64,000 nucleotides of DNA from Fimbriosthenelais zetlandica (GCA_977030845.1 OZ365112.1:21266001-21330000), one strand, 5' to 3'. Shown: positions 1 through 63,663, counted from the stretch's first letter. Numbers and translations: made by a program. The notes: generated by a model from the letters alone, not told the origin.

Positions 1-287
1 TGCGGGTCCTGCTTCACCACGTTCTCCAGGTTCACCACGTGTTCCTGGTGTGCCAGATTCTCCACGTGGTCCCTGTCCTCCTCTTGGTCCGGCTTCACCT
101 CTTTGTCCTGCTGGTCCTGCAGGCCCGGCTTGTCCTGCTGGTCCAGAAGGACCTGGTTCTCCTCTTGCACCTGGTGAACCTGGAGTGCCTCCTTCTCCCC
201 TTGGTCCAACTTCACCTCTTTGTCCTGCAGGTCCCTGTGGTCCAGATGGACCAGATGGTCCTGGCTGTCCAGCCGGGCCAGGAGAAC
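1..287 (-). CDS. Collagen exon 25 (partial, 32 triplets to window edge)
   Basis: gaattAG acceptor at 288-289; GSPGPAGQP...GERGEAGPA runs off position 1. Confidence 0.93.
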
Positions 288-3200
288 CTAATTCAGATAA
301 GATTTAAAATGGTTCATAAAAAGCTTTATAAGAGCTTTATAAACACTAGTAAACATCATTCAGGAAAAAAGGTTCAGAAAAAGTTCATTGAGAATGGAAT
401 GAAATACAAATTAATCATGGCTATTAACAATCCTTTCTTCATTAAGACGAGACTAAATATTGTGAATAAAGTAAGCGCAGTTTTTTCATAAATCATACCA
501 TCACTTCCTGGGGTTCCAGCCTCTCCTCTAGGACCTCGTTCTCCACGGCCACCTCGTGGTCCAGCTCCGCCTGCAGGTCCTGCAGGTCCAGATGGACCAG
601 GTTGACCACGTTCTCCTGCCCGTCCTGCTGGTCCACTTGGACCGGCTGGTCCAGATTCGCCAGGCTGACCAGATTCCCCACGTGGTCCTGCCGGTCCTGC
701 CGGTCCGGCTGGGCCAGGCTCTCCTCGACCTCCATCAGTTCCTGGCTCTCCTCTTGGTCCCGCAGGTCCAGATGGTCCAGATGATCCTACGAACGAAAAA
801 ATAATAAATTGCGATATATGTAAGCTGGAAAATCTTATATCAGTACTACTGAAAGTTAGTTTGCATAAAATTTACATTGTACTTGAATGTGTTCTGTACA
901 TGTTAGATTTATATGAATTACCTGGAGATCCCGGACTTCCAGGTTCACCCCTTTCTCCGGGTTGACCCCTTTCTCCACCTGGACCTCTTTCTCCCCTACT
1001 TCCAGGTGTTCCAGCTGGTCCAGATGGGCCAGGTGACCCTGCTGGGCCAGCTTCTCCCCTTTCTCCAGGTGTGCCAGGTGTTCCTCCTTCTCCTCTTGGT
1101 CCACGTTCACCTCTGGATCCTGCTGGACCTGATGGTCCAGATTCGCCAGCAGGTCCACTTGGTCCAGGTTGTCCACTTGGACCTTTAAACAACAATACTT
1201 TTATTAACCTATGTCCTATTAAAAATTGTGCAACACTTTCTCTACCAAATCTGACTGATTTCAACTGAAAAGGGTTTAAAATCGATTTCAACTGAAAAGG
1301 GTTTAAAATCAATTTCAACTGAAAAGCGTTTAATTACATTTGGATATGGCTAATCATCTGAGAAAGAAGAAAAACCTACCACTTGGTCCAGCTGGTCCTG
1401 GTTCACCTCTGTTTCCTGCTGGTCCTGCTTCACCTCTTGGACCACCTGGTCCTGCTGGGCCACTTGGCCCTGCCTCACCACGTTCACCTCTTGGCCCTTG
1501 CTCGCCTCGAGGTCCACCTGGTCCTGCTGGACCAGCCGGTCCAGATGGTCCAGCTTCTCCTGCTGGTCCTGCTGAACCAGCTTCACCTCTAGGTCCAGGG
1601 CCACCAGGTCTTCCATCAGATCCTGAAATAGATGTCAATTTGGTAAACATCTCATTAGGATCAGGAAAAATCAGGATCTAAACCATTTTGAAAGGATCTT
1701 AGTTTCATCTATGTTATATACTTAAACTGCTTGATATTATTTGTTATATATTAGGCAATTTATTTCTTTGCATAGTTGCTATCGGAATATCCATCACAGA
1801 ATGGATATGGCCTTGCTGGCTTCAATGTTGCTAATATAATCTGTACTATAAATTACCTGGTGATCCGGCTGTTCCAGATTCACCACGTGGTCCACGTTCT
1901 CCTGGTTCTCCTGGTTGGCCTCTTCCACCATCTGGGCCTCGAGGTCCAGCAGGACCACTTGGCCCAGAAGGACCTGATTCGCCTGGCCTCCCTGCCTCTC
2001 CAGCTGGGCCAGATTCACCACGTGGTCCTCTTTCACCTCGTGCTCCTGCAGGTCCTGCTGGGCCTGACTCTCCTCGTGTTCCTGCTGGGCCAGCTGGACC
2101 TGATGGACCAGCTGGGCCAGGTGATCCGGATGGCCCTTGTTCACCAGGCTCTCCTCTACCTCCTGCAGGGCCGGATGGGCCAGCAGGGCCACTTGGACCT
2201 GATGGACCAGCTGGTCCAGCTTCTCCTCGTGCTCCTCCAGGTCCAGATTCTCCACGTCCTCCGCGTGGACCAGCCTCTCCTCTTGGTCCGGGAGATCCTG
2301 CTGGCCCTGATGGGCCACTGGGACCCGATGGTCCAGCAGGGCCTGCCTCTCCTCTTTCACCACGTGGTGATGGGGGTCCTGCCTCTCCTCTGGGTCCAGC
2401 TGGTCCAGGAGATCCTGAAGGTCCAGCTTCTCCTCTAGGTCCAGGTAGACCGGCAGGACCGGCAGGTCCTGATTATTGAAAGTAGTATTTTTATAAACAA
2501 TGTGACACATTGATATATTCAAATGTTCAGATAAATTATGAAGGAAAAGGGAAAATAATGAAAACAGATTAATCATGAACACAGATTAATAATTGAAAAC
2601 AATAAAATCAATTATACCATACCTGGTGAGCCGTCAGCACCGGGCGATCCTCTTTGTCCTGATTCGCCTCTTGGTCCAGATCCACCAGCTGGACCTGAAG
2701 GTCCAGGGGGTCCTGATGGTCCTGCAGGTCCTCCTTCACCTCGTTCACCTCTAGGTCCTGCAGGTCCTCCTTCACCTCGAGGACCAGCAGGCCCACCAGG
2801 CCCTGACTCTCCTCTCTGTCCAGTAGGTCCTGGTGGCCCAGGTTGTCCTTAAAAGAAAAATAATAATTGTTTAATCCATTGCTAATAGCAGATTCAACGA
2901 AGGTCACATTTCTTACTTCACCTGGAATGCTCCACGTACTAAACAAACTATACATACCTACTCCTCCATCTGGACCTGATTCTCCCCGAGGACCTGATGG
3001 TCCTGGTCTTCCAGCTGGCCCTGCAGGGCCTGCAGGTCCACCTTCTCCTCTTTCACCTGCTTGTCCACGTGGACCTGCTGATCCAGGTTGGCCACGTGGT
3101 CCAGATTCACCAATTCCTCCTGCAGGTCCGGGACTGCCTGGCTGACCACTAGGGCCAGCAGGTCCAGCTGGACCAGCTTCTCCTCTTTCACCTTGGGTTC

Positions 3201-6200
3201 CAGGGGTTCCTGATTCACCGCGAGGTCCGGCTGGACCACTTGGACCAGCCGATCCAGCAGGTCCAGACTCACCTCGAGGTCCCGCGGGTCCTGCTGAACC
3301 TGAGGGTCCAGGTGAACCAGCGGTACCTGGTGTCCCTCTTGGACCTTGTTCACCACGTGGGCCAGCTGTACCGGCTGGTCCTGGAGACCCAGATGGTCCT
3401 GAGGGTCCGGGGGATCCCCTTTCTCCTGAAGGTCCAGCGGGACCAGCTGGGCCAGCCTCACCTCGAGAACCACCTGGTCCAGCAGGTCCAGATTCGCCTC
3501 TCTGTCCAGATGGTCCAGCAGGACCAGCTTCACCTGTTAAGTAAAACAAAATGATCCATTATTTCACTTAATGCACTAGATTGTATAATTAATATATTTT
3601 ATTCATGAAATATGTATAGAACATTAAAAGTAGAAGAGGATTGAACATTTCCTACCTGGGGTTCCTGGTTGACCACTTTCACCACGAGGACCTCTTGGTC
3701 CTGTAGGTCCAGCAGGCCCAGCCTCTCCAGCGGATCCTGGAGTACCTGATGGTCCAGCCTCACCACGTGGCCCAGGGGATCCAGATGGACCACTTGGTCC
3801 AGCTTCACCTCTCGAACCAGCTGGGCCAGATGGACCAGCAGGTCCACTTGGTCCGGATGGACCTGAAGGCCCAGCTTCTCCTCGTTCTCCTGGAGATCCA
3901 GGGGTGCCTCCTTCACCTCTGGGTCCTGGTGAACCTCTTTGTCCAGCAGGACCAGGGGGTCCTGACTCTCCTCTGGTACCAGGTGTGCCAGCAGGTCCAG
4001 ATGTCCCTATCATTCAAAATATAGAACTTTACTATGTCTGTGATAAATGCGTACGTTACCATCAAAGTTATATGATTTTCATAGAGAGTATGTTTAGAAC
4101 TCAATATTAAGGAAAGATGTCAAGAAGTTAAATTATTTTGTATTGTTCGGTAAAATGTTAATCACCTTGTGGACCAGGAGATCCTGGTTGTCCTCTTGGA
4201 CCTCCCTCGCCACGTGTTCCAGCGGGGCCAGCAGGACCAGCAGGTCCAGCGGGACCAGATGGCCCAGGTGACCCTCTTTCTCCTTGAGGTCCTGGTGAGC
4301 CTCCTGGACCAGCCTCACCTCTCGGTCCTGAAGGCCCGGCAGGCCCAGATTCTCCACGCTGACCTCCTGGGCCTGGTGGACCAGCTTCACCTGGAGAGAG
4401 AATAATTATGAAGTGGATTAATTTGAATACATTTTAAGTATTATTCAATTAAAATATCACTAGAGGAAAAATCATTATGACATACCTCTAGGACCTTGAC
4501 TACCAGGCTGTCCTCGTGAACCACCAGGTCCAGCTGGACCTGAGGGTCCACTTTCTCCAGCGGGTCCAGGGGAACCACTTTCTCCTCTACCCCCTCTTGG
4601 TCCAGATGGTCCAGATGGTCCTGCTGGTCCAGCTTCCCCTCGTGGGCCAGGTCTTCCTGCAGGTCCTAATGGACCAGAAGACCCAGCTGCACCAGTTGGT
4701 CCGGCTGGTCCAAGTGATCCTGGTGTTCCAGGTGATCCACCTTCTCCGCGTTCGCCACGTGGTCCACGTTGTCCAGCGGGTCCTGGTGGTCCAGCTTCAC
4801 CTCTAGCACCACCGGGGCCACTTGGTCCAGCAGGTCCTACAAGTGTACATAAAAAGGGGTATCAGTATACCTTGCAATTCTCAGTTCATTTTCATTTCAC
4901 TATGAGAATCACTATAGACATATAGTTGAATTTTCAGTATGAATATCAGGTACTTACCAGAAGGTCCAGGTGATCCAGATTCACCTCGAGGTCCACCTTC
5001 TCCGGCAGGTCCAGCCGGTCCTGATGGTCCAGGTTGTCCTCTAGATCCTGCAGGTCCAGGGGACCCTCCTTCTCCACGAGGCCCTGAAGGACCAGCTTCA
5101 CCTCGAGGTCCTCGTGATCCTGATGGTCCAGCAGGTCCTGATGGTCCAGCTTCACCTGGACCTCCACGTTCTCCAGCAGGCCCTGTTACAAAAATCATTT
5201 ATTTTAAGATTGACAGGAGTGCTTAGTTAAAATGTGAATCAGATTGAGGACGATAAATTTATGCCAATATAGGTTTACACACAAATATTAAACTTCAAAA
5301 TACCTGATGGGCCAGGAAGACCAGGCTGACCGCGAGGTCCACCTTCGCCGGCTGGTCCAGCAGGTCCAGCAGGTCCAGATGGGCCAGATGGACCAAGAGG
5401 TCCTGGCGGCCCAGCTTCTCCTCTTGATCCTGGAGATCCACCTTCTCCCCCTGGTCCTCTCTCGCCTCTTGGTCCCCTTGGTCCAGAAGGCCCAGATGGC
5501 CCAGCAGGCCCTGGAGAGCCAGGTTGCCCTCTTGATCCTGCAGGTCCAGGTGGTCCACTTTCTCCGAGTCCACCAGCAGGTCCTGCTTCACCTGGTTCAC
5601 CTCTTGGTCCCGCTGGTCCAGAAGGACCACTTGGGCCAGGTGAACCCGGTTGACCAATAGGTCCGCCAGGGCCTATATCAAAGAAGGTTACATTACAAAT
5701 AGATGCCAATGTTTGGGCCTAGTGTAGGTATAAATAATTGGTTATCATCGTCAATAGTCATTGAGAGAGAATGACCAACAAATGATCCATGTACTGTACA
5801 CTAAAGAAATATATTACAAACCACTCACCTGGAGCACCTTGGGGACCCGCTTCTCCTCTTTGCCCTCTCTCCCCACCTGGTCCTGGTGGTCCAGCAGGTC
5901 CTGACGGTCCTGATGGCCCAGATGGACCAGGTGGTCCTGCTTCTCCTCTTTCAGATCTAGGACCAGCCGGGCCAGGCGGACCTGCTGGGCCACCTGGGCC
6001 TCGTTCTCCTCTGTTTCCAGATGGTCCGGGTGGTCCTGCCTCGCCAGCAGGCCCTGAAGGTCCTGATGGTCCCGCAGGTCCAGATTCTCCACGTGGACCT
6101 GCACCTCCCGCTGGTCCAGCGGATCCTGGTTGACCTGACGGTCCAGGAGGTCCAGATTCTCCTCTATTACCTCTTGGTCCAGCAGGTCCAGGTGACCCTG

Positions 6201-9200
6201 TGTGAGAAAAAATATTAATATAATATAAAACTAATCATTTTAGAAGAATGTAATTTAGAATGATGTAAGGTTACATCTTTTTGATGTATGTGATTCACTG
6301 CAATAGTCCTTTGGACTTGTCTTTACCTGCAGGTCCTGATGTGCCTTGGGGTCCAGGGCCTCCTGATTCTCCCCTTTCTCCACGAGGTCCCGGTTGGCCT
6401 GAAGGTCCTGCAGGACCACTGGGTCCTGGTGATCCTGGTTGTCCTCTTGATCCGGCAGGGCCAGCTGATCCTGCAGCTCCTGTGGGACCAGAGGGTCCTG
6501 ATGGTCCTGCCGGTCCAGCAGGTCCTGCAGGTCCAGCAGATCCAGGTTCTCCTCGAGGTCCTCCTGGCCCTGAGGGGCCTGAAGGTCCAGAAGGTCCTGC
6601 CTCTCCTCGGGCTCCTCTTGGTCCAGCTGGTCCGGGTTGGCCTATAAATCAAATAATATCACCAATGATTTCCCAATCGGATTCCTAAATGGCTGATGAA
6701 TTACTAGAATTACTAGTAATTAATAGTAGTAGAATTACTAGAATTACTAATAGATAATACCAGAGGCGACACAAACAGACAAATAGACAAATCATGATTA
6801 CCAGTTTCTCCACCGGTGCCAGGCTCTCCTCGTTGACCCCTAGGTCCGCTCGGACCAGCTGGGCCACTCGGACCAGGTCTGCCATCACTGCCAGCAGGTC
6901 CTGGTCCACCAGCCTCCCCTCTTGGACCTGGTGAACCTGATTGACCCCGTTCTCCAGCTGGTCCAGGGGGTCCTGATTCCCCTGATGGTCCAGGTTGTCC
7001 TCGTGGTCCCGAAGGTCCAGAAGGTCCTGAAATATGAATAGTGAGTACCATGTTAATAATTATTATAAACAATAAACAGGCTACAAATCAGTTAATCCGC
7101 TGTATATTTGGAATTTTATAGACTTGAAGGTTACACACCAGCAGGGCCTGGAGAGCCACCAGGTCCAGCTTCTCCTCGTGGGCCACGAGGTCCACCGGGC
7201 CCAGAGGGTCCAGGTGGACCACTTTGTCCTACAGGACCTGCTGGGCCAGATTCTCCTCTTGGGCCGCCAGGGCCAGGTTGTCCTCTTTCTCCTGAAGATC
7301 CTGGCTGACCTCTTGTTCCAGGTTCTCCTCTAGGTCCCCCAGGACCAGCAGGACCAGAAGGTCCTCCTGGTCCACGTTCTCCTGATGGCCCAGCTGGCCC
7401 TGGTGGTCCTGATTGACCACGGGGTCCTGCACCTCCTCGAGGGCCAGCGGGTCCTGCTTCACCTGCAGGTCCTGCTGAACCGGGTGATCCTAGAAAGGAA
7501 AGCAAGTTTTAATTAGATGAATGTGTTAATCAGATAATTACAGTGAACTGCCTTTCATAGTGAACACATTTCTTCCACTCAAGTACCCACCCACCTGATG
7601 TGCCCTGGCCCAAGCCATTGAACACTTGCTCTAATTTATTTAAATTTATAATAAGGATTAGTATTCTAAAGTAAACAAATGGAGAGAAATTGGATAATAA
7701 TGGAATACCTTGAGGTCCAGGGGGTCCAGCCTGTCCACGTTCACCAGCCAGTCCGCCTGCTCCTGGAGATCCAGCAGGACCAGAGGGACCGGAAGGTCCA
7801 CTTGGTCCTGGCAGACCCGAAATACCTCGTTCTCCTTGAGGGCCACCTGGACCAGATGGCCCTGGTTGGCCTCTACTTCCAGGTGTACCACGTTGACCAG
7901 GTGGTCCACCTTCCCCTCGCTCTCCTTGAGGTCCAGCAGGACCTGAAGGTCCAGGCTGACCTCGTGGTCCTGAAGGTCCACCTGCTCCTGTTCGACCCGC
8001 AGGTCCTGGTGGTCCTGAAGGTCCAGAGGGACCTGCTCCACCTCGTTCACCTGCTGGGCCGGGTGGGCCGGATGAACCTAGAGAATGAAAATAATGAGCA
8101 TTTAAGAACTGACAAAAATGGCTTAGCTCCTGAGAACTGCTTATATGAGTTAATTACGATTAAATTTGAGACATTGTGATAAATATAATGAAAAATGCAC
8201 TATATGCAAGCACGCATTTTTAGTTCAAGAAAAGGTATACCTGCTGGTCCTGATGGGCCAGAAGGTCCTGCTGGGCCGGATTCACCACGTCCACCAGCTG
8301 GTCCTGAAGGTCCGGCAGGTCCTGGTTGTCCACGGGGTCCTCCAGGTCCGAGTGGACCTGATGGTCCAGGCGGACCAGCCTCTCCACTGGGTCCTGATGG
8401 TCCAGCTTCTCCTCTGGGCCCCCTGGGGCCTGATGGCCCTGAAGGTCCTGCTGGACCACCCTCTCCTCTTTCACCAGATGGTCCTGATGATCCAGGTGGT
8501 CCTGCAGATCCACGTTCTCCGCTAGGTCCAGCTGGCCCTGGTGGTCCAGATTGGCCTCTTGGCCCTGAAGGGCCAGATGGCCCACTTGGTCCTGGAGGCC
8601 CGCCTTCACCAGTTTCCCCTCTTGGTCCAGGAGACCCAGGTTGACCTCTGGATCCCGCTGGTCCAGCCTCTCCACGGGTTCCTGTTCAGAAAGTTATTTT
8701 TTTCATTAAATACATATATTATATGAAATATTGTCAGAATTTTTAAAATGCACTAGGGTTTACTAATGTTCAACAATTATGGTAAATCAATTTTCGTGTC
8801 ATTCAACTTTAGTGATAAAAATGTAAGAACGAACCTGCTGGTCCAGCCGGACCACTTGTTCCTGGTGTTCCCCTTTCTCCTGATGGTCCTCGAGGGCCAC
8901 CTGGTCCAGGTGGACCGGCTTCGCCGCTTTCCCCACGCTCTCCTGCAGGTCCTGCAGATCCTGGTGATCCTCTTTCACCAGAAGGTCCCCGGGGTCCTGG
9001 ACCACCAGATGGACCAGGTGATCCTGGTTCTCCTCTTCCACCTGCCGGTCCTCGGGGTCCAGAAGGTCCAGAGGGACCAGATTCGCCAGGTTGTCCACGT
9101 TCACCACTGGATCCACGTGGCCCTGCTGGGCCTGGAGGACCGCCTTCTCCGGTTTCTCCTCTTGGTCCAGAGGGACCTGCTCCCCCTCGGGGTCCACTGG

Positions 9201-12200
9201 GACCAGAGGGTCCACTGGGTCCTGGGGGTCCGGCCTCGCCTGTTTCTCCTCGTGGTCCACCTGGTCCAGAAGGTCCAGGTGAGCCTGATTCACCTCTTGG
9301 GCCTAATGATTATATATAGATAATTAGGAAAAACAAATTACTATACTGAGAAGTGAGACATACACAGAAACATATTTAACACTATTTACATCTGAAACCC
9401 CTAGGTATTTTTTTATTATGGGTAGTCGATACAAAAAATATATATAGATCTGTATGTACAGTATTTCAGTCAAAATTTGTGATTTTACCTCCAGGTCCTG
9501 AAGGTCCAGAGGGGCCCGAGGGTCCAGAGGGACCACGTTCACCACGAGAGCCTGGTGGACCGCCTGGTCCTAGGGGTCCTGATGGGCCTGGGGGTCCTGC
9601 TCCTCCACGGTTCCCTCCCGGGCCAGGTGGTCCTGCTGGGCCTGCAAAAGTGGTAATGTGATACTATTAATATTAACAAATATTTGGGTGAACCATGTTA
9701 TTTACACAAAATTATTACGAATAGCTTATAGCTCAGAGGAAATTCCTCGCAATATTTAAAAAAAATTAAAATTCGATTTCATGATTTTAGTATTTGAATC
9801 TTATGAAATATCTTTCTTACCTGGTCCTCCTCTGGGTCCTGATGGTCCTGGAAGACCTGATTCACCGCGTGGCCCAGATGGTCCTGATGGTCCCAATGGG
9901 CCAGAGGGTCCTGAGGGGCCAGCTGGCCCTCGAGATCCAGGCCCTCCTAGAGCTCCTGATGGTCCTGACTCTCCTCTAGGTCCTGATGGTCCAGGTGGTC
10001 CAGAAGGACCTGCTGGTCCTGCTGGTCCGAGTGTTCCTGTTGGACCTGAAGGTCCTGCCGGTCCTGGCTGTCCACGTGGGCCAGATGGACCAGATGGTCC
10101 AGAAGATCCTGGTAATCCTGATTCACCACGTGGACCAGATGGACCTGATGGGCCAGAAGGTCCTGGTCTCCCAGAGGGACCAGGAGATCCTGACTCTCCT
10201 CTTGGGCCTGATGGTCCAGCATCTCCACGAGGTCCTGATGGGCCACCAGCACCTGTTCTTCCTGGACCTCCTGATGGTCCTGCTGGTCCACGAGGTCCCG
10301 ATGGTCCTGATGGACCACTTGGTCCTGGTAATCCTGAAGGTCCGCGAGGTCCTGGTGCACCACTTGGGCCTGCACCTCCCCTTGGTCCAGATGGACCAGA
10401 TGGACCACTTGGTCCTAATGGTCCCGACGACCCACTTGGTCCTCTTGGTCCTGATGGTCCAGGTGGTCCCGACTCTCCAGTTTGGCCATCTGGTCCGGAT
10501 GGTCCGGCGGGTCCAGCAGGGCCTGATGGGCCTGGTCGACCTGGGAATCCAATGGTCCCTGTAGTACCCGGTCTACCAGGTTGGCCAGGGAGACCTGAAG
10601 GACCTCTCGGGCCTGATGGGCCCAGAGGTCCAGGGGGACCACTAGTGCCTGACTCTCCCCGTGGGCCTGGTGGGCCTCCAGGTCCCAGTGGACCTGCTGG
10701 ACCTGGTCCTCCGGATGGTCCCGCTGGTCCTGCACCTCCAGGCCGACCGCTTTGTCCCGGAAAGCCTGGCAATCCTCGTCCACCACTTGGTCCTGCGGGT
10801 CCAGGGCCTCCACGGACACCTGATGGTCCAGCTGGGCCAAGTGGTCCTAAACGTCGAAAGAAAAATAATAATTTATCATACAGTAATTCTCCAAGATAAA
10901 CACATATAATGTTCTACCATACATGTACTAAATATTAATAGCTGAATCAGAATTGCTAATGTATTGGGAAAATAACCAATAGTGAATAAGGATATAATAA
11001 AATACTACCTGAAGGTCCAGGTCTGCCGTCAGGCCCAGAAGGACCTGGTCGACCAGGTCGCCCAGCTACACCAGTTCCGCCTCGTCCACCTGGTGTTCCA
11101 TCACGTCCAGGTGGGCCTGGTGGCCCAGGTGAGCCGGGAACTCCAGCTAAATAAAGGAAAATAAAATGAGTAAATTTGCTGCTGTAGAAAGGTGTAATCG
11201 CTATTAATGAAATCTAGAGCTGGACAAATAATTTGCAAGATAAAGACACGTCCATTCTTTTTACATTTCAAAATTTACTTCCTTAAATACCACATACGAA
11301 ATGACTTATGAAAGAATTACTTTTATCCAAAATATAAAATAATGATGAGCGTAGTAAATAGATAATTTGATATAACATGACAAATATAGCACTTGAAATT
11401 AACCAATCTTGCACTACTAAAAGCTTAAAATTAGTTGGGCATGGATCCGTATTTCAGAACAGCATTTTGATATTTACGAATAGCTCTTGGGGTACAGGCT
11501 GTAGCAATGATATCATCCAACATTTCGGGCAGCTCCCAGTAGTTCCTTCGAATGATATAAAATCGCTCTGCTGGATTTCTAGTTGCGATTCTCTGAAGTA
11601 CAGGTATTGGCACTCTGCCTTCTAAATCCACTGCTATAATGTGGGTTGGTTTATCTACCAAAGAAGCCTGGTATCCTCGCAAAGTATTTATATCGGCTGA
11701 TGGGTTTCCAGACAAAAAGACAACGGCAATATTGGGAAATCGATCTTCATCGCGATTTCCACTCCTTGGAGGCGTTGCAAAAACTGTATCAGTCAGAATT
11801 TGCATTCCTGCATTGATGTTGTTTCCACCATTGTTCCGTTGCATCAAAGCTACAGTTTGAGAATTCTCCAGAGAAGTTTGATATCTGTTCAGGAGAAATT
11901 CTACTCGCCCACTGTCAGCATATCGTGACACAGATATACGATTGCGGTTGCTCCCGACATCCAGATTTTTGATGGTTTCAATGGTCAGATTCTTCATAAT
12001 AGAGAAATATTCAAGACGGGCACTCCCATGGAGCAGGAAAGCCCAGTCCAGGTAGCCACATGGAATATCTGAAAAACCATGCCTTTTGTTAGTGTCTTGC
12101 ACATTTTTTTTCGCGCACTGCATCGGCAAGACGCAGGAAATTTGCGCTCATTATTATTTATATCCGCGCGCTGCGCAACATTTAGTTTGATGGAGTTCAA

Positions 12201-14113
12201 GGATGACGGAAGTTGTTTTCTTTTTCTGCTGAAATAAAGATCAAGCATCGCAAAGCGCGGCACATGTAAAAGGGCAGCTGAACTAAAGTGTAAAAATCAT
12301 TATATTTATTAAGCCAATAAAAGCAGTACACAACGCAAAAAGAATCCTTCTTTTTATTTTTTATACTTTAGTTAAAGAAATTATATTCCTTTTTTCAGGA
12401 GACTTTGTTGTCTCATCCTTAAAGTAACTTGGGTTTTTCATATTTCAAGATAGAACATAATCTACATTGTATGTACGTATTGACTGTGAATAATGATATC
12501 TGCCAGAATTCTAATATAATAGAAGGATTTTTTGTGCAACATAATATTAGATGCATTTGGTGATTCAGAAAGACTAGTTTAGCGTGCTTGGCCTCTGCTG
12601 GGACTGAAAATCCTACAATAATCGATTATGTGTAATGGGATTGCTGCAAAAGCCACTGAAAAGAAAACACTTTCAATTTTAGTATCGCTGCTGTTGTAGT
12701 CTACAATGTATGTATTTCCAAATGCATGCTGATGATGATGTGGATGACATCTCCATTTCCTTAAAAGATATCGCCGCGCTGATACACGTATGACAATTGA
12801 TTTAAAAATTGATTCTGTTTTCCCCCATGATTCGGGAATCGTAGCATAATCACTTTAATAGGTTATAAATACATAGAGACCATTTAGATTTATCTGGAGG
12901 AATTTTCTCTACTTCTTGGTCTTAAATGAGTGCAACATCATCAGAAATATATATTTACTTCGTACTGCTGCTGGGCAGATCCTCCCAAGAATTTGCCTAA
13001 TGATGTCAGGCATTCGTTGATTGAAGTCCCCAGCGATGACAGCGTTAATTGGATTGCGGTCTTGGTCAATAATCCTCAAGTTTTCTGGATCGAGGTTCTG
13101 GTTGTTGGTCAGGTAAACTGCAATCAACTCAATACCTGCGTCCCTGGCTAGATCTACAGCAGTATCTAGTTGACTACGGGATAGGGAATTCTGCCCTGAT
13201 GTGAAGACAATGGCCACTTTCCGAGCATATGGCTTGACACCATTTACAAAGAACTGGTTCCTCAGTGCGTTAATGAGGGTCACCTGATTCGATGGGGCAG
13301 ACCCACCAGGACCAACATTTCTGTCTATGGCATCGATTATAGCCCGGTTTCCAGTTCCCTGAGCTTGACGGAATGTCAGTGATCGATCGAATACAACCTC
13401 GCTGTGGTACATGACCAAACCGATTTGTGTCCAGAAATCAGGCCGAACGGTAAAACGATCAACCAATTCCTTTAGCAGGCCCTTCACACCTCTGTTCCAA
13501 CTCTCGATCTGCATGGATTGATCCACAGCAAATACAACGTTGAGCAGCTCAGGACAGTACTCAGGCCTATCGCCTATAAGAGGTGTGGATGAACAAAGAG
13601 CAGTGAGAAAACACAGGCAACTTGGTGATTTACAGTAAAAATATATTTACTGTCAGGCAGCGTGACAATTAGATACAGGGATTTAGTAACAACATACATA
13701 TAACATAACATCCTGGCATCGGATTTCATTTTGACTTTCACACAGTCACGCACAATGACACTCTGCATTCAAATGCACTAGAATTCCTCACTTAAAGTAA
13801 GGATATAATCTATGACTGAAACAAGCACTTGTAAATACTGCATTATTTTGAAGCCTACTGCATTGCAACTGATGGTAAAAGCGCTGATTGTGGTTGGGAG
13901 AGCCCAATGCTTTAAAACTGAATACAAGTTTAGGTGGTGAGATAATGAAAAATCACGGTTCACGCATGATAGGTGTGGATGTGAGGACCTACCTTGTGCA
14001 TCTACAGTAGCAAAGATTCCTAAAAATACCACCAGACAAATTAAGAGCCGAGCCATGTGGCCTGGCAGTAGCCGTGGCCCAGGGGGCCGCGATGAGAAAG
14101 ATCCAGGTGGCAT
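1..14113 (-). CDS. Giant vWA-vWA-collagen (secreted; 25 coding exons in window, 3' end beyond position 1; >=3046 aa)
   Basis: Manual splicing, all GT-AG phase-1 introns, exons in transcription order: 14114-13993, 13573-12959, 12068-11478, 11146-11009, 10846-9821, 9641-9489, 9302-8835, 8681-8241, 8077-7709, 7489-7139, 7026-6802, 6641-6327, 6197-5829, 5672-5304, 5182-4958, 4836-4486, 4390-4166, 4006-3656, 3533-2958, 2847-2623, 2468-1857, 1622-1380, 1182-922, 786-499, 287-<1. Gives one open frame: signal peptide, 2 vWA, 874 Gly-X-Y triplets. Confidence 0.95.
499..786 (-). CDS. Collagen exon 24 (288 nt, 32 triplets)
   Basis: Gly-X-Y; ttcgtAG / GTATGA. Confidence 0.93.
922..1182 (-). CDS. Collagen exon 23 (261 nt, 29 triplets)
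   Basis: Gly-X-Y; tttaaAG / GTAATT. Confidence 0.93.
1258..1333. repeat. Intronic 27-bp minisatellite (ATTTCAACTGAAAAGGGTTTAAAATCR) x2.8
   Basis: Units start at 1258, 1285, 1312 inside collagen intron 1183-1379. Confidence 0.9.
1380..1622 (-). CDS. Collagen exon 22 (243 nt, 27 triplets)
   Basis: Gly-X-Y; atttcAG / GTAGGT. Confidence 0.93.
1857..2468 (-). CDS. Collagen exon 21 (612 nt, 68 triplets; one Gly->Ser)
   Basis: Gly-X-Y except GPP-SPR-GER (Ser codon 2368-2370); taatcAG / GTAATT. Confidence 0.93.
2623..2847 (-). CDS. Collagen exon 20 (225 nt, 25 triplets)
   Basis: Gly-X-Y; ttttaAG / GTATGG. Confidence 0.93.
2958..3533 (-). CDS. Collagen exon 19 (576 nt, 64 triplets)
   Basis: Gly-X-Y; ttaacAG / GTATGT. 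Confidence 0.93.
3656..4006 (-). CDS. Collagen exon 18 (351 nt, 39 triplets)
   Basis: Gly-X-Y; atgatAG / GTAGGA. Confidence 0.93.
4166..4390 (-). CDS. Collagen exon 17 (225 nt, 25 triplets)
   Basis: Gly-X-Y; tctccAG / GTGATT. Confidence 0.93.
4486..4836 (-). CDS. Collagen exon 16 (351 nt, 39 triplets)
   Basis: Gly-X-Y; cttgtAG / GTATGT. Confidence 0.93.
4958..5182 (-). CDS. Collagen exon 15 (225 nt, 25 triplets)
   Basis: Gly-X-Y; gtaacAG / GTAAGT. Confidence 0.93.
5304..5672 (-). CDS. Collagen exon 14 (369 nt, 41 triplets)
   Basis: Gly-X-Y; gatatAG / GTATTT. Confidence 0.93.
5829..6197 (-). CDS. Collagen exon 13 (369 nt, 41 triplets; one Gly->Ser)
   Basis: Gly-X-Y except GPR-SER-GEA (Ser codon 5953-5955); cacacAG / GTGAGT. 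Confidence 0.93.
6327..6641 (-). CDS. Collagen exon 12 (315 nt, 35 triplets)
   Basis: Gly-X-Y; tttatAG / GTAAAG boundaries. Confidence 0.93.
6698..6753. repeat. Intronic degenerate 9-bp repeat (GAATTACTA)
   Basis: gaattactagaattactag...gaattactagaattacta in intron 6642-6801. Confidence 0.65.
6802..7026 (-). CDS. Collagen exon 11 (225 nt, 25 triplets)
   Basis: Gly-X-Y; atttcAG / GTAATC boundaries. Confidence 0.93.
7139..7489 (-). CDS. Collagen exon 10 (351 nt, 39 triplets)
   Basis: Gly-X-Y; tttctAG / GTGTGT boundaries. Confidence 0.93.
7709..8077 (-). CDS. Collagen exon 9 (369 nt, 41 triplets)
   Basis: Gly-X-Y; tctctAG / GTATTC boundaries. Confidence 0.93.
8241..8681 (-). CDS. Collagen exon 8 (441 nt, 49 triplets)
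   Basis: Gly-X-Y; gaacAG / GTATAC boundaries. Confidence 0.93.
8835..9302 (-). CDS. Collagen exon 7 (468 nt, 52 triplets)
   Basis: Gly-X-Y; cattAG / GTTCGT boundaries. Confidence 0.92.
9489..9641 (-). CDS. Collagen exon 6 (153 nt, 17 triplets)
   Basis: Gly-X-Y; ttttgcAG / GTAAAA boundaries. Confidence 0.92.
9821..10846 (-). CDS. Collagen exon 5 (1026 nt, 114 triplets)
   Basis: Perfect Gly-X-Y; AG acceptor 10847-10848, GTAAGA donor 9820. Confidence 0.95.
11009..11146 (-). CDS. Collagen exon 4: start of triple helix (15 triplets)
   Basis: tttatttAG|CT GGA GTT CCC ... CCT TCA G|GTAGTA; [16 protein letters not shown]... Confidence 0.92.
11478..12068 (-). CDS. Collagen exon 3: von Willebrand factor A domain 2
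   Basis: 591 nt, phase 1-1; [17 protein letters not shown]...[11 protein letters not shown]...[12 protein letters not shown]...THIIAVDL...TACTP; flanking Cys pair. Confidence 0.9.
12959..13573 (-). CDS. Collagen exon 2: von Willebrand factor A domain 1
   Basis: 615 nt, phase 1-1; [17 protein letters not shown]...[10 protein letters not shown]...[10 protein letters not shown]...GIELIAVYL...GRICP follows the vWA strand/helix pattern with a flanking Cys pair. Confidence 0.9.
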
Positions 14114-14114
14114 T
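13993..14114 (-). CDS. Collagen coding exon 1: signal peptide ([20 protein letters not shown]|Q)
   Basis: Acceptor ttttgcAG at 14115-14116, donor G|GTAGGT at 13992; in-frame ATGs at 14113 and 14056; 15-residue hydrophobic core and VDA|Q cleavage-like site. Confidence 0.85.
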
Positions 14115-17100
14115 CTGCAAAATAAATTATACAACATAATCAAATTATGTTTTTATTTTTATTGGGTAAGATACTCTTATCAAGTTTAGAATTTTGCTTT
14201 TAGATAGACTTTTAGAGATTATGAGGAAATCTAGCTTTATGTAAAAAAAAAAAATGGAATGTAATCCATTATATAATCAATTAATTGTAATATAAAGCCC
14301 CAGGCAGGTATTCCTGCCGCTAGCCAATACACTATGACTTTTATACGCTAATTAATTCCTTCAAATTTTAGCCTCCGGGGGAATTTCTTTTGTATTTATT
14401 AGTGCAGAGATAATGTAGAGAAGGAGGCTACCTTCTAGCTCATTGGTGTATCACAGACTGCTTGTTCTCTCCGTTCTGAGGGGGGAGCCTTGCCTGGACA
14501 ACTGCCCCTTTCGCCCTCTGGCGTCAAGGACAGATAAACAGACAAGGACCAAAAAATAACACGTCACAAAGAGGCCTCGAAAAAGCCTGTCGCCTCTCAG
14601 TGAGCTGGAAAAGAAAAACAAATCATGCATAAGATTAAATTCAGTTAAAAGTAACTCTTGGGTTTTACATCGAACAAATCGTTTTTAGTCAGTATTTGAA
14701 TCGGTGCTTTAATGTGCATAGCCTTTTTTGGTAACTCTACATCGCTATTAACATTCTTGCTATCGCACGCACACTTAGATATAGTTGAGTTTGAAAGTAA
14801 CGGGAAGACAATGTCATCGGACCTGAATATATAATTATCCGTAAATTTATAGACTGACGATTCAACTGGATTCATGAATCCTAATAATTATTACATTCCT
14901 ATAATTTTACCAGTCACTTCCCGATAGGCCTAATATTATATCAGTGTCATCCACTTTTCACAATAACATAGAACTTTCTGGATCCTGCCTAATCTATCTT
15001 TACCTTACCTTGTCTCGTCATGCCTTACCGGTAATTAAAAGAATTATTTAATACTTTCGCCATGTCATATTTTATAAATCATTCCTGATAGTGTTCATTC
15101 GAACAGATTATGTACATGTAATTTATTACTTTCGACGGATGAAGTTCTTTAACATTTTATCTAAATTACACTATCAGGGTCTGACATTCCATTGGGTACA
15201 TTTGGCAGGTGTTGTTGAGGCCTATTTCTTTCTGTCCACGCTCTATGTACTTCGAAGCATGGGACGTCCTCTATGCTTCTATCACACTCATTCCCAAACG
15301 AAACTCACCCAACCGGTTTTCACCATTAAGCGCCATGTCCAGACGCTCTCGCACCCAGTCTATTACCTTTCGTAACACCTTCATTACACATACCTTTGCC
15401 TTTTTCTCCTGCATATAGACATGGCAGGGATACATCTAAACATTTTCAAGCCTCTTCTAAGGCGTCAATAGTATTGTTTCTTTGGTATTTTTCGTACGAG
15501 TTGCCGGTGTAGGACTATGGGAAATGAATGATGACCTGTCCTAAATTGTGTATACTACAGTATATATAATCCTGATTTTTCATTACTATAACAAAACCAC
15601 CAGACTTTATACTAATCCGGGCCACAATAATCGCGAATCCCAAACTTACAATTGTTTGTTGACAATACTTGTTGCCATGGGACAATAGTTGACATTTTCA
15701 TATTACATAAGGTTTGTAATGATCGGGTTAATGATGAACAGATTATGAGTATTGACTGGTAATGCGACCTCTTGACCTCATGCAGCACTGATACTCAAGT
15801 TGGGACCATTTTCCGAGCCTTTTAACTATTATAATTACATTATCCTACCAATTATATACTTATCGGGGGGAACGTGTATACTCTATGCCAGGCTCGCACA
15901 GGTCTGTGCCTTCTAATTAAGGCTGTTCTGAGAATTACATGAGGTACCCTGTAATAACCTCAAAACCCATGAACCCTTTCATCGCCTATATTTATTATGG
16001 ATGGTACATTGAGCTATATAGTGTGATGGGAAAGCGACAGGATTCACTATAGAAGATCTTATGAAAACTGTGAATGGTGAACTAATATTTCTAGTCCATT
16101 CCTCTAGAATTTTCCTGGGTATCTTAGACTTATTCCACATCATCTTTTCAACTGATTTAGCTTAAGATATTTGAAATAAGACAGTCAGAATATATCTAGT
16201 GGAACTATCAGGGTATACACGATTTCTCATGGTGCACGAATAATTAGAATATGATAAGGCAACTAGTAATTCATAATTTCTTAATGAGAATGTTCTAAAA
16301 TGTAATTGATGGGTTTGTAGTATATAAGACACAGTGAAGCAGAGTTCATATTCCCATTACACAAACTTAATTGCCTCACATGTATAGATCTTCGTCTTTA
16401 GATCCATGCAAACCTTACACATTATCTTTCCTTTATGGACCATAAATCTAATGACCTTATACTAACACACACGCACCCTTTGCGCACCAGCTACATGTAG
16501 ATAAATTTTCAGCTGATGCCCAGATCTCTTTGTTGAATTTTTTGTTGAATAAGCAGTAAATAAATTAAAACGTACAAATATATTACGAACAAGATTAAAC
16601 TTAGCTTGAGCAATGCAACAGCTAGCAAAACTAGCAAATTCATCGCGACATATACATAATTATTTTAATTTTGTACTGGTTAACTTTAATAAAGATATCA
16701 ACCCTGCTGATTTCGCATCGAATCAACTTTTACGGTTGAGGCTAATTTCTTATTACCTAACCTTTAAGGGAGCTAGGTCATCTATCTTGTAATATTTGGT
16801 ATAGGGTCCTGCCTCAGCTTTAGATGACAAGACTGCTAAACTTTATGGTTGTTGTCATGCCAACATGCTGTCATCTACAGATGAACGCCTCTCTAAACCA
16901 GAATGGCTACATGCTGGTAAGAATGGGATCTCCTCACCCCAGATGACCCCTCCTGACATCTGGCAGGATGATCCCTATACAGAAGTCAAATCCAGGACCA
17001 TTGAAAAGGTTTGATATGTTTGGTTAGCACTATGTCATAGTGGATATATCTTCTCAGTGGGGGAGACAGACAAGGCCCAATGCATTTTCACACATGCAGA

Positions 17101-47499: not shown

Positions 47500-47947
47500 G
47501 AAGAGAGGGAAGAGATAGCTGTAGAAAGGGGCGAATTAGCATGGATGACGAGGGAGAGAGACACCATAGAAATGTGCGAATTTTGAGGGTAGAAAAGGGC
47601 GAATTAGCATGGAGCGTGAGGGAAAGGTGCGAATTAGCATAGAGGGTAGAAAGAGGCTGAGGAAGGGAGATAGCTGTAGAGCTGGTCGAAATAGCGAGGA
47701 GGGGAGGTAGAGAGATAACTGTAGAAAGGTGCGAATAACCATGGAGGTTAGAAAGCGAAGTAGCATGGGGGTTGAGGAAGGGAGATAGCTGTAGAAGGGC
47801 CGAATTCACATGGGGGATTAGGAAGGGAGATGTAGAAAGGGGCGAATTAGCATGGGGGTGAGGAGGGGATATCGCTGTAGAAAGGGGCAAATTAGCATGG
47901 GGTTGAGGAAGGGAGATAGCCGTTAAAAAGGGCGAATTAGCATGGAT
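47500..47947. repeat. Degenerate purine-rich minisatellite (about 45-bp unit, core GTAGAAAGGGGCGAATTAGCATGG)
   Basis: About 9-10 diverged copies of GAGATAGCTGTAGAAAGGGGCGAATTAGCATGGGGTTGAGGAAGG or parts of it. Confidence 0.85.
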
Positions 47948-59331: not shown

Positions 59332-62300
59332 CTTTAATCAGACAGATATTTCAGTTAGTTCATTAATTACTGCACTTAAAAAAATCTTTGGGAGTGTACG
59401 AAACCTCGTAAAATACGAATTTCAGTTAAACATAAAAAGCCTACCTGCGCCATCTTCTCCCACCACTCTGGCGTCTCTGGCTGACCTCTCATGCTTGGTG
59501 GTATGAACCAGAAGCAGACATTTGTACACTCGGGCTAGAAATATAAAGATTCCAACGTACATTGTACTTCTCATAAAAACGTAAATGAAAGACGTATTTG
59601 AAAATATCAAAGAGAAAGACACAAAATATGTTTTGCGTTAAACTCACCTCTTCAAAAACAATGCGGAATCCCTCTGTCTTCATAATCCCCTTGGCTAAGT
59701 ACCTGAAGATAAGTATCCTTTGTTTCAGTCCAGTATATTATCATAGAACTATATCTATAGATATAGTTCTATGATATTATAATAAGGACTTAAAGTAGTA
59801 ATTGTCTCAAAGGACTCATAAAACTATACTAGGGGTGTACATGGGTCCCCTTTTTTATGCCCGTGTGTGTCAGAATGTCGCAAAATGTCGCTTGTCAGTT
59901 TTCGGTAGGCTTGTGTGTCGCACCCATTATACTAGTTAATTTAACAGCAATGTACCATCAAAGTCAACTTACTTTGCCTGATCGAAGACATTGTTAATCT
60001 CCTCCTCAAATCCAAGATTACCCTTTGCCTTCCACATGAGCCACAGTTTGAAGACATCCACTTTGCGACCACACTGGATGGACTTGTCCCCAGTATCATA
60101 CGAAACATCATAGCTCTTGTCCTGTTGAAATAGGTAGGAGGCGTTGGCACTGTGACATTCTTTGAGGAGGTTCTCATGCTTGGTGAGGAAAGCACAGCAC
60201 TGAAGAGGAGTACCCATCATCTTGTGAGGGTTCCAGGCAATGGAATCAGACCTGAGAGAAATAAAATTATAGTAGCCCTATGATATAATATTATATAATT
60301 ATATAAATAGAACCTTCTCGAAGGGCCCCAAATCTATAGACAATAGTGTTTCAATTGAGTATTCAAATTGTTTCAACTTACAATTTGCACTGAACACTTA
60401 ATGAGGATTGTAGTTGGGATTACCTTTCAATGCCTTTGAGGAGGTGTCTGTATTTTCCAGAGAGGAGAGCACCACCTCCCCAGCAGCAGTCAACATGGAG
60501 CCAAAGACCGTATTTCTCACAGACATCAGCAATAGGATGGAGTGGGTCATAGGCACCTACTACTGTGGTCCCACTAGTAGCATCCACAAAGAAAGGTTCA
60601 TATCCCTGAACAAAATAAAAGTCATCCAAGCTGTTCAACATTATCTCTACACTATGTGATCATCTCAAGCTGCTCTAAAATTTTCAACATCAAGAGCTCG
60701 TTATTTTTCGTTTTTCATTTATCTTATTATAGATTAACACAAACAATTTACATCTACCTCTTCTTTTGACTCGATTATCATCCTCTCGAGTTCTTCAGGG
60801 ATCATTCTGCCATATTTGTCAACTGGCACTGTACGAACATTGTTGATGCCAATTCCAAGGAACGCGGCACCCTTATTGAGAGAATAATGTGCCTGGAATA
60901 ACAGTAGATAAGCAAGATAATGCAAATGATCTAACAAAATTAGTAAAAACGTCACAAATTTCAATCATCAAACGATGGAAATACTTATAAGTGAGCTTAC
61001 ATCCTGAGAGATGAAGAGACAGAGTTTCTTGCCATGCATTCCCTCAGTTTTAACTTCAGGGAACCTCTTGTAACGAGCAAGACTCAAGCCATACATGTTG
61101 GAAATACTCCCACCTAACAGAAATAGGAACGACAATCCCTTTATAAAAACTTACATATATGATATAGAATATCCAACAATAGATCATATATACTGGGTGC
61201 ATGACGATCTACTTAACACATAAGTATGAATGTGATTGAGTATCTCGACAAGTAAATAACGAATAAGTACACAATACTGAATTATCAAATTTGAAGTTAA
61301 AACAGAGGTCTCTGATGACATATATGGGACTGAGTCATAATCTGCAGTCATTATTTCCTTATTATCTAAAAATTAGTATTGGGAAAACTGTAAGCATAAA
61401 AACTGTAAGCAATATTAGAATTTTTATCACTCCAAAATAAATGATAGGGTTATATAGATTTCCCGTTCCCCACAGTGATATCAGGTGATATTATACCGAT
61501 ATTATTGCCGAATATATGGCAAGTATTCCTGGGACAAACCATGTCGCATCAGAAAGTGATATTTCTTATTCATACATGTTTTCCACATAGTTATCGACGA
61601 CGCAGAACTTGTAATAGAAGTGTTAACTACATATCTGCCTTTAATTAGATACTGCAGCATTTCGAATTTTAGAAAATTGGGTAGAATAATTCGAAACATG
61701 TCTATAGTTAAATAAAAGAGTAGCACGATGGTAAAGTATTATATCGATCACAAACTACATGTATTAATTTGTTACAAGTCAGAGTAGAATTTTGGCACTT
61801 CAGGACCACATCTTTGGTCTACCATTTTCGGAATATTGAATACCTGGGCAGAAAATGCCATCTCCCGCCACATAGCCGATGATGTCTCGCATTTTCTTCA
61901 ATACAACCTGTTCCATTAGTGTGAAGACAGGAGCAACTTCAAAAGTATACCTGAAATTTTTATTTTAACCTAAGTATTGCATAATTGCATTGTCAAGATG
62001 AGGTGCATACCTGTAGAACATAGAAGGTCTTGATAATTATTCGAACACGGTTTGAAAGGTTTAATAAGATTTTGGTTTATAGCATCATATGACACAATGT
62101 CATGTGTCCAGCTTCAATTTGGCTCCAGCTTACTCAAGATTTCACAAAGTAGTATTAAGAATGTGTAAATGACGCTAATAGATAGCAGGAATATGACCTT
62201 CCTATCGTCATCAACAGGTATACACCAGGAGACCGTGCCCATGACATCTTGCTATACAATGTCCGACATCTGAGTCCGGTTGTCAGTGACAGTGAGAAAG

Positions 62301-63663
62301 TACAACTTTATTATTCATTTCTTTTCAGAACATCAAGTAACTTAGTCATATATTGTATATAACTGAATAAAAATATGTGAATTAATGTTTCTTAAAATAG
62401 CACTGGACTTCAGATGGTGATGGATGGGGGTGGGTGGACTGTGGTAGGAGGGAATATTGCGTTTGTTGCAGAATGTGTGCAGCTGCAGGATGGCGGGTGC
62501 ATAGGTCTTACGACAGTATAATGTATCATCCTGAGTGAAGGGGTAAAGTGAAGACATTACAAGGGACACTTACTGGCTTGTATTCACTGTATCGGAGAGC
62601 CAGGCACCTGCAAGGCCGACCTTGTCAAACCCGGAGAACAGTTGGTTGAAGAAATATGGATGACCTACAAAAAGAAAGATTTGTTGAACAATATGCTGCA
62701 GGGGATCATCCATTGCAAAAGGGAGGGGGCATTCAAATTGATAATAATATCCTTAGCTTAAAAGTAGCATTGTTTTATGACTATGAGTTGTATCGAGGAG
62801 TAGGCCTACTCACCTGTCTTGACACTGTACTTGATGGTGTCGCGACAGGCCTGTAATAACTCTTCATCTGATACCCCTTTATCACTAAGTTCCAGATCAA
62901 GTTTCTTCATCAGCTCCTTAGGGTGCTTGAAATCCACCACTTTGCTGATAGAAAAAAAGCATAATTTAGAAACATTGTCAGAATTACTAGTATCGTTTAC
63001 CAGGTTCTGGATTCTTTGTTTTGCGAATAGTAGGCCTATAATTATTATATACCAGAGATCTTTCTTTATTTTCATTCGTTATCAATTTTACTAAATATCC
63101 GCACCCTGTAAATCTTTTATTTTTTATCCGTAGGTGTATAATGTTAACTGTAGGCTAATTGTCAGAGTTGTACTCATTATGCGATATCTAGAGTAATCTT
63201 GATTACACACTATGATTACGCTTTCAAACCCTATATAATGTGCCTTCTGGCACTGAGAGAATTAAGGTTAATGCAAGGATTATGCATACATAAAAGTGGA
63301 TAGAAAACCTTAGCTGTTTGGTTCTCATCAAAACATATATAGAAAGACCATTTGAATAATTACTTATTAATATCAAACGACTCCTCGACTCCTTCTCTGA
63401 CAAGAATGTCAAAGACTTGTTGCAAAAAAATGTTGCTCTCTTCAGAGAGACAGCTGGAATGATTGCCATTCGCATGGCCGTTGGCTTTTCCTGGAGAAAA
63501 ATAGATAATTGATACGTGTTATTTAACCATTATTTTGATTTACTCTTCTTTTATAGATGCAATTATCCATAAATTGTAATTTTTATGTAATATTGTGGGT
63601 ATCTAGACGTATAAGATATAAGTAACATTCATTACCATCCATGGTATATCCGTTGGCAGCCAT
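59158..63663 (-). CDS. GADL1/CSAD: PLP-dependent acidic amino acid decarboxylase (cysteine sulfinic acid decarboxylase / GADL1-like, group II), 12 exons, about 503 aa
   Basis: Exons 63663-63636 (tentative), 63490-63364, 62944-62814, 62664-62574, 61950-61844, 61113-61001, 60892-60758, 60605-60424, 60251-59973, 59702-59648, 59534-59445, 59331-59158 splice GT-AG into 1512 nt incl. TAG. Motifs [74 protein letters not shown]. Confidence 0.93.
59445..59534 (-). CDS. Decarboxylase exon 11
   Basis: [30 protein letters not shown]. Confidence 0.92.
59648..59702 (-). CDS. Decarboxylase exon 10
   Basis: [18 protein letters not shown]; GTGAGT donor. Confidence 0.9.
59973..60251 (-). CDS. Decarboxylase exon 9 (PLP-binding Lys)
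   Basis: [19 protein letters not shown] (Lys codon 60221-60223)...[39 protein letters not shown]. Confidence 0.95.
60424..60605 (-). CDS. Decarboxylase exon 8
   Basis: [22 protein letters not shown]...[15 protein letters not shown]...LKGIER. Confidence 0.94.
60758..60892 (-). CDS. Decarboxylase exon 7
   Basis: [19 protein letters not shown]...[18 protein letters not shown]. Confidence 0.93.
61001..61113 (-). CDS. Decarboxylase exon 6
   Basis: [37 protein letters not shown]. Confidence 0.93.
61844..61950 (-). CDS. Decarboxylase exon 5
   Basis: [36 protein letters not shown]. Confidence 0.93.
62574..62664 (-). CDS. Decarboxylase exon 4
   Basis: [31 protein letters not shown]; GTAAGT donor. 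Confidence 0.93.
62814..62944 (-). CDS. Decarboxylase exon 3
   Basis: [21 protein letters not shown]...[11 protein letters not shown]; GTGAGT donor. Confidence 0.92.
63364..63490 (-). CDS. Decarboxylase exon 2
   Basis: tttctccAG|...[10 protein letters not shown]...[21 protein letters not shown]|GTAATT; joins in frame to KVVDF. Confidence 0.8.
63636..63663 (-). CDS. Decarboxylase putative first coding exon ([10 protein letters not shown])
   Basis: ATG at 63663 with an upstream in-frame stop, second ATG in ACCATGG context, phase-1 donor G|GTAATG matching the next exon; no homology support. Confidence 0.5.

Follow-up and report, generated by a model that had tools for sequence, protein, structure and literature searches.

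To our knowledge, the collagens of the annelid cuticle form the longest triple helix known. Their molecules reach 2.4 µm in the account of Gaill et al. (1991) quoted in PMC2443231, and where PMC11766948 cites Gaill et al. the class is described as globular domains with a very long helix. Earthworm cuticle collagen is a chemical outlier, with abundant 4-hydroxyproline (4-Hyp) at Xaa and abundant Gly-4Hyp-Yaa tripeptides (PMC8233474); Gly-Hyp-Ser gave the paper of Goldstein & Adams (1970) its title, as listed in PMC2111847. The Alvinella genome paper of 2025 (PMC12403961) lists, in its Table 1, collagens of 7,719-8,859 amino acids (aa) in alvinellids, including one of 8,859 aa in A. pompejana, and a comparable one in Eisenia andrei (GWHPACBE014886); it notes high proline at X in earthworm, and gives lengths and proline percentages only, with no domain structure. 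As proteins, molecules of this kind are already known, and published lengths exist for the genes; in the literature we searched, annelid cuticle collagen has been described by protein chemistry and electron microscopy and lately as a bare length in genome tables. Here we analyse a 64,000-nucleotide (nt) stretch of DNA (OZ365112.1:21266001-21330000; the window), whose minus strand carries the beginning of a gene for a giant collagen headed by two vWA domains. We read it as the 5′ 14 kilobases (kb), about the first third, of a ~55-kb gene encoding a giant structural collagen of the type found in annelid cuticle, a reading to which we give a probability of roughly 0.6.

Coordinates refer to the 64,000-nt stretch, and the gene lies on the minus strand (1-14113) with its 5′ end at 14113. 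It comprises 25 exons (Table 1), and all 24 introns are GT..AG, in phase 1 and 95-890 nt long. A Gly-X-Y scan of the minus strand returned 24 blocks from bases 1 to 11144; at the borders of the collagen exons the AG acceptor overlaps the first G of a Gly codon (G/GN) and the donor reads G/GT, and the complete collagen exons from 9821 leftwards are all multiples of 9 nt. Upstream of the collagen, a signal exon and two vWA domains, each in a single exon, are joined via phase-1 introns. Spliced from the ATG at 14113-14111, the reading is 3,065 aa long (~9.2 kb), stop-free and still open at base 1, and runs from an N-terminal hydrophobic signal through the two vWA domains (PF00092) to 874 Gly-X-Y triplets (2,622 aa; Pfam Collagen, PF01391), in which two Gly→Ser substitutions are the sole departures. 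We placed the start at the upstream ATG because it opens a 13-residue stretch that is conserved, in frame, in two other species, one of which lacks the inner Met; signal cleavage is likely after V-D-A in exon 1. The bases directly before the start codon (14114-14120, ttgcag/a) resemble a splice acceptor, and a 5′ untranslated exon may lie further upstream.

The original prediction had listed the signal peptide, the two vWA domains, the 874 triplets with two Gly→Ser substitutions and the open edge, all of which the 25-exon model and Pfam return exactly, and its figure of about 750 nm for this part of the helix agrees with the ~0.75 µm computed here. It overreached in offering a candidate full gene, since the window holds only about the N-terminal third.

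That fraction could be judged from relatives. An exhaustive HMMER search with vWA1 as query gave two close open reading frame (ORF) fragments, at 54% and 48% identity, and the relatives' loci are Logan contig L001 and a 1.43-Mb contig of an ENA assembly, hereafter called the relative; exon-level identity of vWA1 is 53% to L001 and 43% to the relative. A word-indexed protein search with the same query matched only the 53% relative, ESM Atlas held generic vWA clusters only, and the exhaustive vWA1 search found no annotated full-length relative, only ORF fragments and generic multi-vWA proteins. Both contigs have the vWA-vWA-collagen layout of the window, and the first collagen exons are identical in size in all three species. 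The 1.43-Mb contig was walked in 10-kb steps and a full gene model was built (a composite of L004-L009), with 62 exons over 54,078 nt, 9,275 aa, no internal stops and GT-AG at all splice sites. In length, its first 21 collagen exons are identical to those in the window; ungapped identity at X and Y over the 874 triplets is 58% in register against 23-27% when shifted; and both Gly→Ser sites of the window recur at identical helix offsets (1242 and 2091), which rules out sequencing error as their source. Because exon lengths, X/Y register and Gly→Ser offsets all match, the window gene is the co-linear counterpart of the relative's gene. It is a real, conserved gene, and most likely continues for ~40 kb beyond base 1.

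The relative therefore supplies the dimensions of the complete molecule. Its helix measures 8,650 aa, in which 2,877 triplets are perfect and seven micro-breaks occur, or ~2.47 µm at 0.286 nm per residue, in a chain of ~837 kDa (~2.5 MDa for three chains); the portion in the window, 2,622 aa and open-ended, amounts to ~0.75 µm. A giant cuticle collagen of annelids should have a helix of ~1.5-2.5 µm, and the 2.47 µm of the relative stands beside the 2.4 µm at most recorded by electron microscopy. It should also carry a globular domain at one end, and two vWA domains lie directly ahead of the helix; the terminal globule of the micrographs could be this vWA pair.

Composition points the same way. 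Pro occupies X in 54% of the window triplets, while Y is shared among Ser (24%), Ala (24%), Arg (20%) and Pro (19%); the commonest triplets are GPS (154 of 874), GPA (137) and GPR (88), and Lys, Cys, Met, Trp, Tyr and His are absent from the helix. This imino-acid profile is read from DNA, in which hydroxylation is not readable; led by GPS and GPA with Pro at X, it fits the Gly-Hyp-Ser chemistry of earthworm cuticle collagen. Along the relative's helix, Pro at X starts at 62% on the N-terminal side, drops to 12% and recovers to 43% by the C-terminal end; over the 2.5 µm there is also a gradual change in which Ser and Gln at X increase and Ser at Y decreases. Thr occupies Y in 16 of the last 45, membrane-proximal, triplets against 20 of the 2,832 elsewhere. 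Since glycosylated Thr at Y is a known stabiliser of Riftia cuticle collagen, going by the title of reference 58 in PMC11766948, the membrane-proximal end is a plausible nucleation site for the helix.

Five of the relative's seven breaks are Gly→Ser or Gly→Ala substitutions, at residues 1671, 2520, 3629, 5620 and 6964 of the composite, and the other two are partial triplets of two residues. All five substitutions share the context (S/A)-x-R-G-E-(A/Q)-G-E, and two of them correspond to the window sites at 5955-5953 and 2370-2368. Such sites may be deliberate hinge or recognition sites and not tolerated defects.

At the far end of its helix, the relative's gene has a feature that the window does not reach. 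The last collagen exon ends ..GFAGLGAV at a phase-1 donor; 1.2 kb further on, after a long pyrimidine tract and a phase-1 acceptor, the terminal exon encodes ALAQ.., a charged stretch of ~30 residues, a 22-residue hydrophobic helix, RKLRSK and an acidic tail of ~150 residues, with the stop directly after S-F-L. A COLFI or NC1 domain is absent. The tail is 43-98% identical across six proteins of other assemblies, with 51 invariant columns and the conserved motifs SDAESGS.., FDYD, LDSELNE, HLTT.RH.FRHA and the C-terminal S-F-L; Pfam gave nothing above threshold on it. Intron-free contigs of ~4 kb from two further species (one Logan run for the first, three for the second) carry collagen, GLGAVALAQ, the transmembrane helix, the tail and the SFL-stop within a single frame, the longest such ORF being 1,183 aa, and a search with the tail region of this longest ORF found no annotated full-length relative. 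The genomic copies are interrupted by an intron every few hundred bases; the simplest explanation of these contigs is therefore that they are transcripts, which they probably are, and the anchor would then belong to the collagen messenger RNA (mRNA). An N-terminal signal peptide together with a C-terminal transmembrane helix implies type I membrane topology, and the relatives' giant collagen is predicted to be made as a type I membrane protein. Separated by ~11.5 kb from the 3′ end of its giant gene, the relative has a second, convergent collagen gene (L014:554-3474, plus strand), which ends in a transmembrane helix of its own and a related tail of shorter length (..NDTESAF..SSIVDFDG..).

At the opposite end, the nearest solved relatives of the vWA domains are the collagen VI alpha-3 N-domains, the vWF A domains and the integrin alpha-2 I domain, and the similarity is generic only, with single-domain E-values of 1e-5 to 1e-7. 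Neither window domain has a complete metal-ion-dependent adhesion site (MIDAS) motif, and both are predicted to be without a working metal site.

How does this architecture compare with described collagens? With annelid cuticle collagens (Gaill et al. 1991, 1995; Kimura & Tanzer 1977; Goldstein & Adams 1970) it shares a micrometre-scale, nearly uninterrupted helix with a globular head at one end, Pro mainly at X, abundant Gly-Pro-Ser and Gly-Pro-Ala, and the lack of lysine for cross-links, and with the giant annelid collagen models of PMC12403961 it shares a length class of ~9,000 aa. The annelid cuticle collagen papers searched do not mention the vWA-vWA head or the C-terminal anchor and tail of the present family. 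A literature search likewise found no description of an annelid transmembrane collagen, and the combination of a double vWA head, ~2,880 triplets, a type I anchor and a conserved tail was not found described in the literature searched.

The membrane-associated MACITs XIII, XXIII and XXV and collagen XVII (PMC4678570) are the nearest parallel for the anchor: they too are single-pass membrane proteins with a largely collagenous ectodomain, in which the helix probably nucleates beside the membrane and shedding of the ectodomain is possible. MACITs have type II orientation, the N-terminus forming a cytosolic domain ahead of a signal anchor (PMC4678570), and several interrupted helices in fewer than 1,500 aa, whereas the relatives here are type I, with a helix of ~8,650 aa, seven tiny breaks and a distal vWA head. 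A type II, MACIT-like assignment does not hold, since the start resembles a signal peptide with a V-x-A/T cleavage motif and the relatives carry their transmembrane helix at the C-terminal end, with basic residues behind it.

Vertebrate vWA collagens (VI, VII, XII, XIV, XX, XXI, XXII and XXVIII) likewise join an N-terminal vWA domain to a collagen helix. The present family differs from them in having no FN3, TSPN, Kunitz or C-terminal vWA domain, a degenerate MIDAS, and a nearly uninterrupted helix ~6 to 25 times longer; we rejected a FACIT or collagen VI-type assignment on the vWA domains, which are two and stand ahead of the helix only, and on the relative's seven micro-breaks in 8,650 aa. 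Fibrillar collagens (clades A-C) share the long uninterrupted helix and the structural role, but have a COLFI C-propeptide and ~338 triplets, whereas the relative has ~2,880 triplets and no COLFI; their exons follow a phase-0, 54/108-nt pattern, whereas those here are multiples of 9 nt with a split Gly codon (phase 1). This class was rejected on the relative's C-terminus, a transmembrane helix with a tail, and on the 874 triplets, against ~338, present in the window alone. The nematode-cuticle collagen class was rejected on architecture.

Taken with this comparison, the window gene is probably a chain of an annelid-type giant cuticle collagen. Several points weigh against that assignment. We know the window gene from its DNA, and its placement in the cuticle we infer; its own 3′ end lies beyond the window, and an anchor is ascribed to it from co-linearity with the relative only. 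Cuticle collagen in published extracts bears a single terminal globule and goes into solution without detergent, and any anchor must therefore be removed or lost. In composition tables for Lumbricus cuticle collagen, the measured Arg is lower, and Thr and Asx are higher, than our prediction. The pattern of the literature (PMC12403961) would point to an annelid host.

The most serious competitor, which we nevertheless consider unlikely, keeps the gene in this family of giant membrane-anchored collagens but places its function outside the cuticle, the true cuticle chains being other paralogues. Such a protein could be a cell-tethered adhesion molecule or spacer, for example at muscle or epidermis attachment sites, around chaetal sacs or in tube-secreting glands. 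The strongly conserved tail with its PDZ-like S-F-L end does suggest a lasting link to the cell over a throw-away propeptide, and the relative's second transmembrane collagen gene, convergent and ~11.5 kb away, speaks for it too. Yet 2.47 µm and ~837 kDa (~2.5 MDa as a trimer) fit the cuticle molecule and, among annelid collagens described so far, it alone (PMC2443231), the Gly-Pro-Ser/Ala chemistry is that of earthworm cuticle (PMC8233474), and ~4-kb transcript-like contigs in four runs from two species suggest an abundant mRNA.

Less probable still is a host that is not an annelid, the gene belonging to a wider spiralian family of giant vWA-collagens whose match to the cuticle molecule is coincidental. 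We looked for a taxonomic marker in the window and found none, which leaves room for this account; collagens of such length have, however, been reported from annelids only in the literature searched (PMC12403961, PMC2443231), and the excess of Pro at X is an earthworm signature (PMC8233474). Finally, that the gene arose by faulty assembly, or is a decaying array of repeats read by chance as Gly-X-Y, is barely credible: collagen repeats are prone to misassembly, as the authors of PMC12403961 caution, but the ~9.2-kb spliced reading crosses 25 exons without stop or frameshift, the window is free of N, three species agree exactly in exon sizes and position-specific conservation is 58% against ~25%, and we rejected the artefact on this cross-species conservation.

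A giant collagen of the annelid cuticle type thus remains our preferred reading, and it revises several expectations of the original prediction. Its call of an annelid-type giant cuticle collagen stands as far as a genuine giant vWA-vWA-collagen with Pro mostly at X and Gly-Pro-Ser as top triplet is concerned, the placement in the cuticle being the inferred part. The class it had called poorly sequenced is less unsequenced than assumed, as PMC12403961 lists giant collagens, though as lengths without domain structure. It had named a C-terminal COLFI or NC1 domain, with a vWA phylogeny pointing to a well-described family, as a finding that would contradict it; the relative ends instead in a transmembrane helix and tail, and the vWA similarity to collagen VI, vWF and integrin I domains is generic. 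The total helix length and C-terminal domain it wished to see are answered in the relative, with 8,650 aa and a membrane anchor that it had not foreseen, and not in the window gene.

If the cuticle reading is right, a sequence of events can be proposed. The protein would be made as a type I membrane protein, with a short juxtamembrane segment (GLGAV-ALAQ..), one transmembrane helix and an acidic cytoplasmic tail, and three chains would be put into register at the membrane. The helix would nucleate at its membrane-proximal, Gly-X-Thr-rich C-terminal end and zip toward the N-terminus. The rod would carry a knob of six vWA domains at the distal end and, probably once cut close to the membrane, would be deposited in the cuticle that overlies the epidermal cell. 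Assembly of the vWA knobs and of a helix that is rich in Hyp and free of Lys would proceed without lysine-derived cross-links. More tentatively, and with considerable doubt, we suggest that the conserved tail docks to a PDZ or cytoskeletal scaffold in epidermal microvilli, such that, before release, the register of the rod, its folding from C to N and its orientation would be under the cell's control.

Such docking, if true, would let the cell direct how the orthogonal 'plywood' of the annelid cuticle is built, and this would be the first collagen anchored in type I orientation; a C-terminal membrane anchor of this kind would be a new way of making collagen. A Lys-free helix rich in Pro at X would be a natural design for very long rods that are not cross-linked. 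The complete, cross-checked gene architecture makes three matters testable: the identity of the terminal globule, the register and folding of a helix of ~8,650 residues, and the orientation of fibres above the epidermis.

Table 1. Exons of the giant collagen gene in the window, in order of transcription.
Feature	Position	Strand	Length (nt)	Content
Exon 1	13993..14113	-		ATG 14113-14111, conserved Pro/Arg-rich N-region, hydrophobic signal, phase-1 donor
Exon 2	12959..13573	-		vWA1, Cys-bracketed; PF00092 E 1.9e-17; MIDAS imperfect (DQSMQ)
Exon 3	11478..12068	-		vWA2; PF00092 E 4.4e-16; MIDAS Asp absent (LLHGSAR)
Exon 4	11009..11146	-		triple helix begins, directly behind vWA2
Exon 5	9821..10846	-	1,026	114 triplets; PF01391 E 5.9e-45
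Exon 6	9489..9641	-	153	collagen
Exon 7	8835..9302	-	468	collagen
Exon 8	8241..8681	-	441	collagen
Exon 9	7709..8077	-	369	collagen
Exon 10	7139..7489	-	351	collagen
Exon 11	6802..7026	-	225	collagen
Exon 12	6327..6641	-	315	collagen
Exon 13	5829..6197	-	369	first Gly→Ser (codon 5955-5953, GPR-SER-GEA), offset shared with the relative
Exon 14	5304..5672	-	369	collagen
Exon 15	4958..5182	-	225	64-triplet unit A, start
Exon 16	4486..4836	-	351	unit A, end
Exon 17	4166..4390	-	225	unit B
Exon 18	3656..4006	-	351	unit B
Exon 19	2958..3533	-	576	225+351; unit C, internal intron missing; 576 nt in the relative too
Exon 20	2623..2847	-	225	collagen
Exon 21	1857..2468	-	612	second Gly→Ser (codon 2370-2368, GPP-SPR-GER)
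Exon 22	1380..1622	-	243	collagen
Exon 23	922..1182	-	261	collagen
Exon 24	499..786	-	288	collagen
Exon 25	1..287	-		cut at window edge; counterpart exon in the relative is 441 nt

Within the window, the stretch 2623-5182 shows the exon pattern 225+351, 225+351 and 576 (=225+351). Identity at non-Gly positions among the three 64-triplet units A, B and C is 0.36-0.53, compared with ~0.25-0.30 for unrelated stretches, and on this pattern we assign exons 15-19 to an old 64-triplet duplication with one intron missing. The 576-nt exon is common to the relative, and the loss of the intron is therefore older than the split of the two species.

Beyond the collagen gene, Rfam and tandem-repeat scans of the window gave nothing relevant. 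Open stretches on the minus strand at 59972-60277 and 62809-63078 resemble, by the motifs of the family, exons of a pyridoxal-dependent decarboxylase of GAD/CSAD type; the rest of 14.2-58 kb has no long coding-looking open stretch. A short G-rich tandem repeat at 47755-47945 (period 45/86, ~4 copies) coincides with a GC-skew peak at 46-48 kb.

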